The notes under the pieces were generated by a model. That model worked only from the letters and a program-made list of their open reading frames with translations, searched no databases and was not told where the DNA came from. This document shows, piece after piece, positions 1 to 6,465 of a stretch of 64,000 bases of DNA (positions are counted from its first letter, which is position 1; each line of letters starts with the position of its first letter). The translations under genes and the position numbers were made by a program. The stretch is taken from assembly GCA_964057225.1 (NCBI GenBank), contig OZ059899.1, forward strand, positions 4,836,001-4,900,000. Direction: 5' to 3'. Origin of the DNA: Auanema rhodensis (Eukaryota; Animalia; Nematoda).

Positions 1-1724
1 CTCGATCAAAGACTAGTCTTTTCATACATCATCACTCTTTCCTTATTTGCTCACTGCAACTTTTCTCAGTTGGCTGCTTGGCCCAAGACTGTTCAGGTTT
101 TTATATTATATTCATATAAGTTTAATGAAAACAATTTTTAGTGTGGCATTATTGGTCTTTTCCATGCTGCTGTTGTGTTCTACTGTCAACACAATATCCA
201 CGAGAATCTGGTAAAAACTTATAAATGATTTATAAGTACAAATGCTTTTCTAGGAAACTGGAGCTTGTACTAACAATACCGTTCCTCTCAACACAGTAAA
301 CGTGAAAAATGATACTGAACGTCTTCTGTTATCTCCACTTTTCCTGTGGGAAATAATGCTTGATGTTGTGCTTTCAATCATTTTGGTCGGATTTTTGAAT
401 TATCAGGTTTATTATTCCTATTTTCGTTCTTATTTTTTATTTTTTCAGTTTGAAGCTGCTTTCCGTATGTCTTTCTTCGGTGATATTCAGGCTAAAAGAG
501 ATACTCACCGAATGCAGGTGATTATGAAAAAAATCAATTTTAACTTGAATTATTTGTTATTTTTTTTAGATTGTGCGTGATCAAGCTGATTGGCTATTAA
601 ATAACATTATCCCAGCACATGCGGTTGAAACCTTGAAAACTGACACCAAATACAGGTATGTTTTTAAAATTTTTCTCTATAATTTTATAAAATGGTTCCT
701 AAAATTTGGAAATCTTATGATTTTCTAAAGAAAACGCTAGAATGGCTAAAAATAGCCAGGTGAAGTGACGTGTCAGCTACTTGTTTCTTACGCCTCCTTG
801 AATAATTTGTTATTTTCGTTTCAAATAAACTTTTTTGCATTTACAATTTTTAGCTATTTTTAACTTTTTTATTCTAGTGAAAATCATGAATCTACTGCAG
901 TTTTATTTGCTTCAATTACGAATTGGAATGATATGTATGAAGAAAATTTTGAAGGTGGAAGAGAATTTTTGCGTGTTTTGAATGAGGTGAGTTATTAAAG
1001 CATTTGAGGATTTTATAGATGTACTTACTGTACAGGTTATTGGAGACTTCGATGAACTTCTTGATCGTCCTGAGTTTTGTCATATCGAAAAGATTAAGGT
1101 ACATTGTTAAAATGAAATTGTAAAATATTTGTTTGCTTCAGACAATTGGTGCATCTTATATGGCAGCCAGTGGATTGAATCCAGAACAAAAAAGAAATAT
1201 GAAACATCCTAAAGAACATCTGTATCAAGTACTTTTCTCTTGTTATTGTCGTGAAACGATTATTATTCTTTATAGATGGTGGAATTTGCATTAGCTATTC
1301 AGCATGCCTTGAGCGTTTTTAATGAGGATCTTCTCAATTTCGACTTTGTTTGCAAGCTTGGACTGAATATAGGTTTAAGAGATTTCTCTGTAAACTAAAT
1401 TGTAGCATACCTTAATTCAGGTCCTGTCACTGCTGGTGTTATTGGTACAACCAAACTGTATTATGATATTTGGGGTGATACTGTTAACATAGCCTCCCGA
1501 ATGTATAGCACTGGCGTACTGAATCGAATTCAAGTAAATTAACTTCTATATGATAACTTCATAACTTCTATATACACATAAATTTATAGGTTTCACAGCA
1601 CACTAAAGATATATTGATGGATCGTTACGATTTTGAGTATCGAGATCATATAGAAGTTAAAGGTATTGATGGTGGTATGGATACCTACCTATTAGTCGGA
1701 AGAAAGCCCGAACAATCAGCGTAA
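1..1724 (+). CDS. acy-1: Adenylate cyclase (ADCY9/ACY-1 type), 3' part (last TM helices and C2 catalytic domain); 5' end lies outside the window
   Basis: Spliced translation gives ...[11 protein letters not shown]...[10 protein letters not shown]...[38 protein letters not shown]...[16 protein letters not shown]...[32 protein letters not shown]...VKG. All introns are GT-AG. Stop TAA at 1722-1724. Confidence 0.93.
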
Positions 1725-1750
1725 TACTATGTATTCATTAATAGAAAAAT

Positions 1751-1793
1751 CTAAAACTAATCTTCAAATCTAAACCTAAAACTAATCTTCAAA
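1751..1793. repeat. Short tandem duplication of CTAAAACTAATCTTCAAA (2 copies, 25-nt period) in the acy-1 3' UTR
   Basis: Identical 18-mers at 1751-1768 and 1776-1793. Confidence 0.8.
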
Positions 1794-2309
1794 CTTAATA
1801 TGTTTTAATTTGCATAGTTTAGAATGTTTGCATTTTTTTAACGCTTTACGAAATTAAGTTTTGCTTGCCATAGATAGCTACGGGTAGAATTTAGCATAAT
1901 TTTGCAAAAAGTTGTATCTCTTGCTGAAGCTTTATTGCATTTCTATTGTGACCTCATAATATAGTACACAGTAGTTCTAAAATAAAAATTTTTATTCTTT
2001 ACTCAATGAGCTATAAATAAACTTACACATGTAAAATCTACAAATACCAGTACTAGATATAGTCGGAAAAGGCATAGAATACTACAGAACAAAAAAAATA
2101 AAATTGAATACATTACTGATGAATTCAAATAAAAGGGAGGACACTTGAGAGACAAACAAACAATTAAAAATATGCCATTTTCTTTACGGATGGTTTCACT
2201 ATATATACAATATGAACGAAATGATTTGAAATAATGGAAGACGATTTGACCGGCAATATGAATTGAGATGCTTTCCTAGAAGGCTCGCATTTGGTAATAT
2301 CACAGACAA

Positions 2310-5300
2310 TCATAGAATGGAACAACACCGGCAAACACCTAAAATAAAGAGCATTATTAGCAACGATTTTAAAAAACGGAATATCAACTGATTACTTCAT
2401 CGGTCTCGCTACCGTATTCCAGAGCAAATTGGTATTGTCGCCCTCTTGCCCAAGACATGTTTAGAGCATTTCAGCTTCTACAAGAGTTCGTCTAAGTCAA
2501 GCAAAAAATGAAAGTATTAGTTGTTACAGCATTAATAGCAACAACTAAATAACTGCACTAAAGGCAGAAAAATTCTTTAGGTTGACTAGTAGTAGTGCTA
2601 ATGTCTTAGTACAAACAGAAGAAAATAGATGAAAAATGTGAATAAAGTTATCTCTTGTGAGGCAAATATTAGAACACAACGAGAATATTACTAGATTCAC
2701 TATTATTTCTATTCATTTCCTTCTTTTTCAATGATTAAAGTTCGAACGAAGACAGTAATTCAGACAGATTCAAAAGACATGTCTTGGCGTTAGAAAAAAA
2801 TTTGGATGTGTATGTGTGTACGTGTGTGTTTCAACGTAATTTAGAGCAGAGACATCGAATTATAAATATCGTGCCACTCTGAGGTGAGTTGACGACAGGA
2901 CTAAGCTCTATTATTAGCGTACGGATAGCCAACCTATTGAATGATACAATACGCACCAGCCCTCGGATGTTGATGATTAACGGGAGGCGTCGCTGGAGCG
3001 AAGTAGGCTTGAATCTCGACGGTTGGACGATGTACCTAAAATAAATTGAAGTTTATAAACATGACTAAATACACACGATAACAATTGTTTCAATTATCTT
3101 ACCTTGAACAGATTAATTGCATCACGAGATACGTTAGGACAGTCGTAGAGATCAATTCTTTTTAGATTTTTGGCATTTCTCAGATATGAGAGCGCTGTAT
3201 CCGTAATTAACGGACAATTATCCAGCTCCAATATCTGAAGAGTTGCAATTAAGTTTAAATGTTTTTTTCAATAAAAAATAAGATAATATACCCTAATTCT
3301 TTCTTTATTATTTGTACACAACTGATGAATAGCATCGTCAGTAATTTGCTCACAGTGAGAAAGACTCTGAAATAAGCAAGATTAGAGATCAAACTTTGTA
3401 ATAGAAATTCTGACCAAATCAGCAATGTTGGGGCAATTTGAGCTAATACATGTTATTGAAGCATCAGTTATAAGAGTGCAATCTTCAAGATCCATCTTCT
3501 GGAGTTTTTTGCAATGCCGTCCAAGCTGTAGAAAACCAACATCTGACAGCAGATTGCAGCCAGTGAATTCAACATCCCTTTAAACAAAGAATATTCGTTT
3601 AAGAACAGATTCTTGACTTTTTTTTTCGTTATTCGAAATACTAATTAACTAACTTGAGGAATTTACAGTTATTTGCCAACGCAATAAGAGAGCGATCAGT
3701 TATTTGAGTACATTGCGACAGACAAAGATATTCAATTTTTGGACAGCCATTGGCAATGTTAGTTACGGTGTCATCAGTAACCTAATTAAAACTGTAAGAA
3801 AAAAAACATTTTTTTAACTGCTTACAAAACAGTTGAGCATATTTAAACGTAGAATATTTTCCATATTCGGTTCCAAGTTCTCAAAACAACGCTCAGTTAG
3901 CTGAAATAAGAATTAAGTTACAAATAAAGATATTAGAACTTATACCCCTTCGCATCCTCGTAATATTAGAGTTTGTAGATATTTACAACCCGTAAGAATG
4001 TTGTGTATTCCACGATCCGTAATGCTATCACACCAAGAAATATTTAAATATCGCAAGTTTGGACAACCTTCGCTGAAAAAGTAACGGAGCGTAGTTATGT
4101 TTGCTGAATTTATTTTCTACCTGATATATTTACAAGCTCTATCGGTGATAACTACGCAGTTTTCTAGATTCAAATGAATGAGTCTATGACAATGCTTTCC
4201 CAAATTCTCGCATGTACTAAATATCGTTCAGTTTTAATATTAATAATCATCGACTTACGCATCCGTGACTCTACGGCATTTATACAAACTTAGATGTTCT
4301 ATATTTTTGCATCGAGCAGTAAAAGCACGCAGAGATGAATCCTAAGAATATAAATTTTTATTTGTTCATATATTTACGATTTCCCACTTGGACGTTTTCG
4401 CAGCCTTTAAGAGATAACTGTTTCAAAAAACCACCACATCGCCTCGCCAGATTTTCAATGACACTACTCTAAAACCGTTAACTTAGACAATGAAATTGCA
4501 GAAAAAGACGCTATACTTTGACATCTTTTTGAAAAGTGAACAGATCTACGCGTTGCCAATTACTACCGTCGAGAGCAAGCTGATTCCATAAACGACAAAC
4601 CTGAGCAGACCGACACAAGTCTTTAACTCCCAAAAAGGAGAAAATACTAAAATTTGCAATTGGTATTGGAGAAAATCAATTGCAAAGTTAAAAAATAGTT
4701 CAAAAATAAACATTGATAACATACTGGAGTATACATTCCCGAGGAAGCTTGTTTATGAGGGCACCGTCCTGTGATGAAGATGATAAGGTTGTAATCAAAT
4801 ACATCTGAAACTAAAGAAATTCAGATTACTACCAATTTCCACTTAATTATGAAAAAATCGACATAAATGTCGAAATTGTATTTGTGAAAAATAACTGGAT
4901 TCCTTGTTTTCATCAAATGTTCAAATGTTTACTATAAAGATTGAAAACGATTATCTATGCAACAATAAAAAGATTGTTATAGTTTGAAAGTAGCTTCCCA
5001 ATTTCGCTAGTAAAGATATAATATTCAAAAATATCTGAAGCATGCAAGATTTTGAAGAAAACAAAGATCAATAATATATTTCTTTTGTAAGACGAAAAGA
5101 GGTTCGACTCATTTCAAAAATAAAATTAAGTAATTTTCAAAAGATTAACCTGATTATGCTTAGCCTGTATTGTTGGACGAGAACCTGCTGGTACATAACG
5201 TTTCTTGATTCGCCGTGAACAGGCGCCTCCATTGATATTCTATAATATTTGATAGGTCAAATAGAATTTTACCAGCGAGTTTGGTTGTAGAGTAGGAAAC

Positions 5301-5603
5301 ATTTATTTTATGTAAAGTGTAGTATGTAATTGACCAGATCACGTGAATAACGTGAATATTATTAGATTTTGCCGCCCAATTATTTACAATTCTAAAATCT
5401 TTAGAAGCACAGACCGGTTGAAGTAAATTTTTGTTGTTTCAAAATAATGCTTTTTTAATGTTCTATTTTTTCGATATTAAGTTTAATTCACCATAAATAT
5501 TTATTTTTTATGTTATGTTAACAATTTTTCGAGAATATTTTGGAAATATAGTAAAGCGTACCTCCACCGGGTGGATATCTTGTTCAGAATCGCCCGCACT
5601 CAT
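2310..5603 (-). CDS. fbxl-1: F-box/LRR protein, FBXL2/FBXL20 orthologue, ending in a CaaX box
   Basis: F-box LINKLPRECILHIFSFL...LCRSAQVCRLWNQLALDGSNWQRVDLFTFQKDV, then ENLARRCGGFLKQLSLKGCENV, about 12 Cys-containing LRRs, and AYFAPATPP. Terminal exon 2338-2310 encodes (G)VCRCCSIL*. Upstream exons 5603-5562 and ~5239-5150 are phase-compatible. A shorter start is possible at ATG 4804. Confidence 0.9.
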
Positions 5604-6465
5604 AGACTCATAACCTTAAAACGAATATTAAAATATGGGTAATGAAACTGCACATGAAAAGCAGAAATTAAAGATGAATCTATTAGAAAGCGAAAAAACT
5701 ATTTTCCCGGTTAGCTTAAAAATAGCTATGTGCTCAGTTCGTAAGACTTAGAAGGGAGAACAGCATTCATCCGTAGATGCTTTTCTCGAGCCAAAATAAC
5801 GATACATTGCACCCAAACAAGAAAAAAAGGCATAAGATGAGGGACTATGTGCTCATGCCTTCACCAATCGATGCGAACACTGCAAAACAAGTAGGCAGTC
5901 GTTTTCACATAGTGTTAGAGGTCATAATATTATAGTAACGGAGAAGAGCAGAGACTATAGTAAAGCTATCTGGAGAACCCTGCGCAAACTTATAATAGTT
6001 TCTTCAGTACTACATGTGCTCATAATTGAAGCACCGAGGTGGAAGCATTCTTTTAAAAAAATTGTCATCTAACTGAGAACAAAACCAAAGAGTACGTCAA
6101 CGCCCATAGGCCTGCCCGCCGGTCGGTCACGGGATTCGCTCAGCTGAGTGCTGTCTGGGGCTGCGGCGGCCCAGAAGCTCTCTGGGCTGCATGTGATTTC
6201 TCGCTGCCTGGTATCTCTGTTCTCTCCGCTCTGTGTCCACACCCTCGATTCATCAATGCTATGCTGTCGAATTTAACTCTCCTATTTCAAAATACTCTCT
6301 CATTACTCAGCTGTTTGTCACTGACCAACTTCCCGCAAGAGTGGACAAAGCCCGTCACCACCACGTACCGTTTAGTAGCCCTTGTCAAATAACAAATTTT
6401 AAAGAACGGAAGATTTTTTTGGTTCTTTTCAGGGATATACATTATAAGTTCGATAATAATAGAAT

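Follow-up and report, generated by a model that had tools for sequence, protein, structure and literature searches.

Can the splicing of the last exons of a gene decide whether, and by which lipid, a ubiquitin-ligase subunit is held at a membrane? This question is raised by fbxl-1 of the nematode Auanema rhodensis, which lies on the minus strand of a 64,000-nucleotide stretch of contig OZ059899.1 (positions 4,836,001 to 4,900,000; called the window in the following, with positions counted from its first letter). A first-pass annotation of this DNA had pointed out that the protein could end in either of two CaaX boxes, CSIL if the last donor is spliced and CIIQ if it is read through, and had proposed a switch between geranylgeranylation and farnesylation. 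On balance, we favor a different answer: the 3' end of Auanema fbxl-1 is a conserved and regulated alternative-splicing unit that sets the presence or absence of the lipid anchor, and the CIIQ box is most likely a by-product of it. The idea that splicing controls the anchor tail is thereby kept, but the main event is a cassette exon that removes all cysteines from the tail, not the exchange of one CaaX for another.

The gene is, judging from its sequence, an FBXL2/20-type fbxl-1 orthologue, as had been claimed. It has 15 exons, from 5603 to approximately 1978. In a domain search carried out exon by exon, the F-box was found in exon 4646-4517 (PF12937, E 5e-13; PF00646, 3.4e-07), and leucine-rich repeats (LRR_6/LRR_4 matches) were found in further exons. 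For the homology search, the window exons were queried singly and supplemented with database orthologues. The largest exon led to a hookworm homologue, P0021, which as a full-length query led to nematode fbxl-1 and vertebrate FBXL2/20; the largest-exon search was dominated by proteins with many leucine-rich repeats, and its value lies only in the choice of P0021. The closest relative of the window gene is P0158 of Auanema sp. JU1783, which has an LRR_FBXL15 domain, and the best named matches of this orthologue are again nematode fbxl-1 and vertebrate FBXL2/20. The JU1783 locus (L001) also has the same neighbor as the window, an adenylyl/guanylyl-cyclase gene, tail to tail.

Both CaaX tails are written in the DNA. 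The exon 3035-2957 ends in phase 1 at G2957, and the donor, checked base by base, is G/GTGCGT (the slash marks the exon end). The acceptor AG occupies 2340-2339, with 2338 as the first base of the last exon; when G2957 is joined to 2338, the reading is GT GTT TGC CGG TGT TGT TCC ATT CTA TGA, that is G-V-C-R-C-C-S-I-L-stop, with the stop at 2312-2310. When the donor is read through, the codons are GGT GCG TAT TGT ATC ATT CAA TAG, that is G-A-Y-C-I-I-Q-stop, with the stop at 2936-2934; the tail HPRAGAYCIIQ is thus encoded exactly as the first-pass annotation had it. C-I-I-Q-stop, at 2948-2934, fits the motif of farnesyltransferase (FTase), with a cysteine at -4, aliphatic residues at a1 and a2, and X = Q directly before the stop. 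The preference of FTase is for an X among M, S, Q, A and C. A literature search for CIIQ as an experimentally tested motif gave unrelated acronyms only. In the six frames of the window, the strict form C-[AVILM]-[AVILM]-X stands before 0.25% of 6,040 stops, and the loose form before 0.94%. Given these rates, a CaaX directly after one pre-chosen donor is unlikely by chance, as had been argued, but the coincidence is not extreme and is no proof.

The RNA gives the locus a further exon. Four RNA runs (X1, X2, X3 and X5) were compared as contigs with window 1500-5300; X5 is from a related taxon, and its 3' untranslated region (UTR) is unlike that of both the window and JU1783. Because single contigs of X1-X3 skip all 13 other fbxl-1 introns, the contigs of these runs are complementary DNA. 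The CRCCSIL tail does follow in frame when donor 2956 is joined to acceptor 2339, as had been predicted, but the interval between them is not one intron: it splits into an intron of 479 nucleotides (nt), an 82-nt cassette exon and an intron of 57 nt (Table 1). The joints 2957-2477, with 479 nt skipped, and 2396-2338, with 57 nt skipped (given as 2336 to 2394 with a cut of +2), are each present in X1, X2, X3 and X5, and both have CT..AC ends on the plus strand, which is GT..AG on the strand of the gene. Read in frame, the cassette gives GAA GCT GAA ATG CTC TAA, with a predicted protein end ...HPRAEAEML. Because the exon shifts the frame and brings a stop after five codons, this tail contains zero cysteines, and thus none that could be prenylated or palmitoylated. 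As a separate observation, the ATG inside the cassette opens a frame beginning MSWARGRQYQFALEYGSETDE (window 2386-2470, minus strand), a candidate that would extend over the 57-nt intron and enter the last exon in the +1 frame; no evidence points to its use.

The 479-nt intron is partly retained. In X1, X2 and X3, unbroken contigs of 513-538 nt run from inside the cassette (2449/2451) across the whole intron and into exon 3035-2957 (2963-2986); therefore, RNA encoding ...GAYCIIQ exists, and the prediction of RNA that reads through donor 2956 is confirmed in three runs. Genomic DNA was considered as the source of these contigs and ruled out, as the other large intron of the gene (339 nt, 4811-5149) has zero depth at 4929-5055. 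A hexamer scan found no canonical AATAAA within the retained intron. The cassette joint and the retention contigs have a depth of the same order as that of the main contig of the gene, and the anchor-less and intron-retaining forms are the ones most readily assembled; contigs, however, reveal neither RNA ends nor strand and give no reliable ratios, and their depths cannot rank the parts of a gene. As for the anchor-encoding joint 2957-2338, contig end-points and orthologues support it indirectly; it probably exists but seems to be a minor path in these samples. The X3 retention contig begins at 2983 and not at 2986, as would be caused in a 31-mer graph by a third path sharing G-T-G after 2957, and contigs of X3 and X5 break exactly at 2338.

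Comparison with JU1783 indicates which part of this region is under constraint. The coding exons (n = 13) are 79% identical between the window and JU1783, and the upstream introns (n = 12) are 46% identical, that is, unalignable. At the end of the gene, the read-through codons 2956-2934 are 100% identical, and the next 94 nt (2933-2840), which are non-coding in the read-through frame, are 94% identical. The cassette is identical at 81/82 positions (99%, versus 79% for the coding exons); its sole change is an L-to-I substitution at codon 5, and not one difference is found in the 65 nt that follow its stop. The copy of the cassette in X5 differs at 1 of 85 letters, compared with 11 of 92 for exon 5150-5241. 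High identity extends for approximately 70-90 nt beyond both stops. Because the 94-100% identity continues for approximately 90 nt past the CIIQ stop and coding exons reach only 79%, there is no sign of selection on the CIIQ peptide; as far as the alignment goes, conservation within Auanema says nothing for or against such selection. What the alignment does point to is a constraint on both conserved blocks (Table 1) that is at the level of RNA, not of protein, and is centered on the used splice sites.

The public JU1783 model hides this arrangement. P0158 ends in ...HPRA-ELSPVVN-stop via an annotated acceptor 49 nt into the intron (L001:6710-6787, corresponding to window 2956-2880). We rejected this acceptor (window 2909-2908): the frame behind it stays open in the window but meets a stop in JU1783, and the retention contigs are unspliced across it. 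The CRCCSIL tail is not in P0158 but is encoded intact farther downstream in L001; the last exon of P0158 is probably mis-set and the annotated acceptor a prediction artefact. This means that the gene model needs correction, the public protein having an unsupported ...ELSPVVN tail and having lost the conserved anchor.

Across the phylum, it is the tail ending in L that is maintained. The CRCC-a-a-L tail is kept throughout Nematoda in the orthologue comparison, and the phase-1 intron before it is kept in most species compared. On donor read-through, a CaaX appears in 0/10 other nematode species, from eight other genera; GAYCIIQ-stop is common only to the window and Auanema JU1783, with identical nucleotides. 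The expectation that relatives would share the read-through CaaX thus holds for the congener and for none of the ten other species, and selection for CIIQ in relatives was not found, the next ~90 non-coding nt being equally kept in JU1783. The proposed switch would have been abandoned if both retained RNA and a conserved motif were missing; retained RNA exists and JU1783 keeps the motif, yet ten species are without it. No similarity to the Auanema intron was seen in the last introns of Diploscapter, Mesorhabditis and two Caenorhabditis species, and a cassette homologue can be neither claimed nor excluded there. Many public models (P0021, P0043, P0154, P0156, P0163, P0073 and P0306) have lost the CaaX tail by read-through of the last donor or by a wrong frame of the last exon. 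From these sequences, the fbxl-1 anchor is under-annotated across the nematode phylum.

We propose the following mechanism for the 3' end of the gene. When the cassette is skipped (2957-2338), the protein would carry the conserved ...GVCRCCSIL tail, with the CaaX cysteine geranylgeranylated and the two preceding cysteines palmitoylated, by homology with human FBXL2. When the cassette is included, the protein would have the cysteine-free ...PRAEAEML tail and might be soluble, or the RNA would be destined for decay. The two blocks of 96-97% identity may act as cis-acting RNA that sets the splice choice. A candidate cis element is an 11-nt perfect complement by which the intron island (2787-2777) could pair with the cassette (2460-2450), just after the cassette stop. 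The 479-nt intron is likely a slowly or conditionally spliced ("detained") intron beside a regulated exon, and the CIIQ codons, lying inside the conserved donor-proximal element, are most likely incidental. Two 9-mers also recur, in RNA sense, between conserved parts of the intron and the cassette, TGCTCTAAA (2840-2848 and 2460-2468) and ACATGTCTT (2774-2782 and 2452-2460); these may be protein-binding sites or chance.

Several observations weigh against this mechanism. All own-species runs are from one study, with a library type that is not on record, and contig depths are unusable as isoform ratios. Among the 15 of 18 joints listed, the direct 2957-2338 joint is absent, and contigs of X1 and X2 run unbroken from the 3' UTR over 2338 into the cassette; the mRNA with the anchor may thus be scarce in these samples, which would be surprising given how well the tail is conserved. 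The conserved blocks fold no better than shuffles (z-scores +0.7 and -0.4), a duplex between blocks 1 and 2 is no better than shuffles either, and the 11-nt pairing is reached in 8% of shuffles. Rfam, searched on both strands, gave no match, the sole sub-threshold hit being to mir-101 in another exon. As the comparison covers two genomes that do not differ in the CIIQ codons, selection for these codons is inseparable from selection on an RNA element. Finally, none of the other nematodes examined has an annotated cassette or cysteine-free isoform.

Other explanations were weighed as well. The unit might control dosage only, with a poison exon and a detained intron both yielding RNA that is degraded or kept in the nucleus, so that no alternative protein arises and the splicing merely determines how much CaaX-bearing FBXL-1 is made. 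In favor of this, the last exon junction is 65 nt downstream of the premature stop, the cassette is conserved at the nucleotide level and most strongly where it does not code, its single substitution (L to I) falls in the five new codons, and the whole matches the pattern of ultraconserved poison exons. However, the cassette joint is present in every run at a depth comparable with the main contig, which is more than an efficiently decayed RNA should show; we therefore regard pure dosage control as rather unlikely. The blocks might also be something else altogether, such as an unrecognized small RNA or an antisense element in the intron, with the isoforms as splicing noise and CIIQ as chance. 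The nucleotide conservation without a conserved reading frame would fit, as would contigs that give no strand. A structured small RNA was nevertheless rejected on the fold z-scores, the shuffle test and Rfam, and the blocks coincide exactly with used splice sites (donor 2956, and the acceptor and donor of the cassette), the cassette being spliced on both sides in four runs; such an element is highly improbable.

The switch originally proposed would require a translated FBXL-1 ending in CIIQ, made by intron retention or intronic polyadenylation, farnesylated by FTase, without the palmitoylated cysteines, and placed at other membranes than the CRCCSIL form. Since the intron-retaining RNA is real and the motif is shared with the congener, we leave a small share of belief for a real farnesylated isoform. 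Three runs contain donor read-through RNA, with the other large intron spliced out completely; JU1783 has the identical CIIQ-stop; a strict CaaX is rare before stops; and X = Q suits the enzyme. Yet the conservation is of nucleotides and continues well beyond the stop without a sign of peptide selection, no read-through CaaX occurs in the ten other species, the intron has no canonical AATAAA, and the stop in the retained RNA is followed by approximately 900 nt and by another splice junction, which makes this RNA a likely substrate of decay or nuclear retention. We consider a farnesylated CIIQ protein improbable. It is also possible to imagine three C-termini from one conserved unit, CRCCSIL with geranylgeranyl and palmitoyl (cassette skipped), CIIQ with farnesyl only (intron retained) and AEAEML without lipid (cassette included). 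We regard this as very improbable; if true, the three-tail splice choice would be a graded "lipid code" for the location of a Skp1-cullin-F-box (SCF) ligase, with the conserved RNA blocks as its sensor.

Compared with known systems, the choice between anchor and no anchor combines features that are familiar separately. Passages in PMC9988375 describe human FBXL2 as geranylgeranylated at C420 and palmitoylated at C417 and C419, with both modifications needed for membrane targeting, and cite literature (its ref. 32) in which the prenylating enzyme is GGTase3. The premise that FBXL2 is geranylgeranylated and needs this for membranes thus stands, but the enzyme named there is not simply geranylgeranyltransferase I (PMC9988375). 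Human FBXL2 and FBXL20 (SCRAPPER) resemble the window gene in having an F-box, cysteine-containing leucine-rich repeats and, as encoded in the DNA, a tail ...YFAP.TPP...CRCC-a-a-L; unlike them, Auanema has a cassette exon and a retained intron directly before the anchor codons. No report of splicing that removes or swaps the FBXL2/20 tail was found in the literature searched. In other families, splice-controlled CaaX tails are described for OAS1 (p46 versus p42), CDC42 (ubiquitous versus brain) and Arabidopsis G6PD5, where, according to passages in PMC6950736, PMC10883850 and PMC9478949, alternative 3' exons give a protein with, without or with a different CaaX and thus alter its membrane location. 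The Auanema exon differs in being out of frame, in adding five codons, and in being conserved as RNA and not as protein; moreover, the retained intron holds a second candidate CaaX.

Genes of splicing regulators are known to contain ultraconserved poison exons and detained introns. The Auanema unit is similar in its stop-bearing cassette, in an identity above that of neighboring coding exons, and in a flanking intron that is partly retained. Indeed, four runs show splicing at both ends of the cassette, which carries an in-frame premature stop (TAA 2463-2461), and the cassette nucleotides are conserved above the neighboring coding sequence (99% versus 79%; 84/85 in the third taxon). The host, by contrast with the poison exons of splicing regulators, is an F-box ligase adaptor and not an RNA-binding protein, with no obvious loop of self-regulation, and the conservation is known within one genus only. 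The unit thus joins two known kinds, splice-controlled CaaX tails and stop-carrying cassettes; in the literature searched, we found neither of them for FBXL2/20 or fbxl-1.

Table 1. Features at the 3' end of fbxl-1 in the window, and donor read-through in other nematodes
Feature	Positions	Strand	Evidence or reading
Penultimate coding exon, encodes VHRPTVEIQAYFAPATPPVNHQHPRA plus first base of next codon	2957..3035	-	Joints 3032/3100 and 2477/2957 in RNA contigs X1-X3; translation; orthologue tails
Read-through codons (G)AYCIIQ plus TAG, candidate second CaaX	2934..2956	-	Translation; 100% identical in JU1783; not at the same donor in ten other species
479-nt intron, GT..AG, partly retained	2478..2956	-	Joint 2477 to 2957 in four runs; unbroken contigs 2449/2451..2963/2986 in X1, X2, X3
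82-nt cassette exon, frame-shifting, E-A-E-M-L-stop (TAA 2463-2461), cysteine-free tail	2396..2477	-	Joints 2477 to 2957 and 2336/2338 to 2394/2396 in X1, X2, X3, X5; canonical AG and GT; 81/82 identical in JU1783
57-nt intron, cassette to last exon	2339..2395	-	Joint in four runs; 65% identical to JU1783
Terminal coding piece (G)VCRCCSIL plus TGA, palmitoylatable cysteines and CaaX ending in L	2310..2338	-	Translation; one synonymous change versus JU1783; CRCC-aaL tail kept across Nematoda
3' UTR of fbxl-1, end approximate	1978..2309	-	Contig pieces 1978..2336 (X1) and 2018..2336 (X2); AATAAA at 1996-1991
Conserved block 1: last 28 nt of exon, donor and first 90 nt of intron	2867..2984	-	97% identical to JU1783
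Conserved block 2: cassette plus 30 nt of intron before it and 15 nt after it	2381..2507	-	96% identical to JU1783
Conserved intron island with one arm (2787-2777) of the 11-nt perfect complement to the cassette	2763..2795	-	31/33 identical to JU1783
Diploscapter pachys, two gene copies, same GGTGCGT donor			Read-through GA-stop
Caenorhabditis auriculariae			Read-through GNGYLLPAKAH-stop
Caenorhabditis bovis			Read-through is a long open frame
Caenorhabditis angaria			Read-through GAA-stop
Cooperia oncophora			Read-through GTSAFRVLFPISC-stop
Heligmosomoides polygyrus			Read-through GTYSDLA-stop
Haemonchus placei			Read-through GISISLIGINI-stop
Bursaphelenchus xylophilus			Read-through VSI-stop
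Mesorhabditis belari and older Pristionchus model (intron shifted)			Read-through ICR-stop

Elsewhere in the gene, identity to JU1783 reaches 95% or more in 5569-5621, the start-codon region in exon 1, and in 5214-5261, the acceptor and start of exon 2; the remaining coding exons, at 79%, stand well below this. Downstream, the cyclase gene (plus strand, stop at approximately 1724) and fbxl-1 (minus strand) stand tail to tail, with contig ends approximately 20 nt apart (1958/1959 versus 1978). In a single X3 contig the two genes are linked, and 50 nt (1977-2026) are skipped.

To our knowledge, very few subunits of ubiquitin ligases are directed to membranes by a CaaX anchor, and FBXL2/20 belong to this small set. 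The location of FBXL2/20 decides which substrates are destroyed; for human FBXL2, these include PI3K p85-beta and IP3R3. By removing the anchor, a conserved splice unit would give this ligase family a further, genetically tractable layer of control, and, if the CIIQ form is true, the unit would also change the type of anchor.

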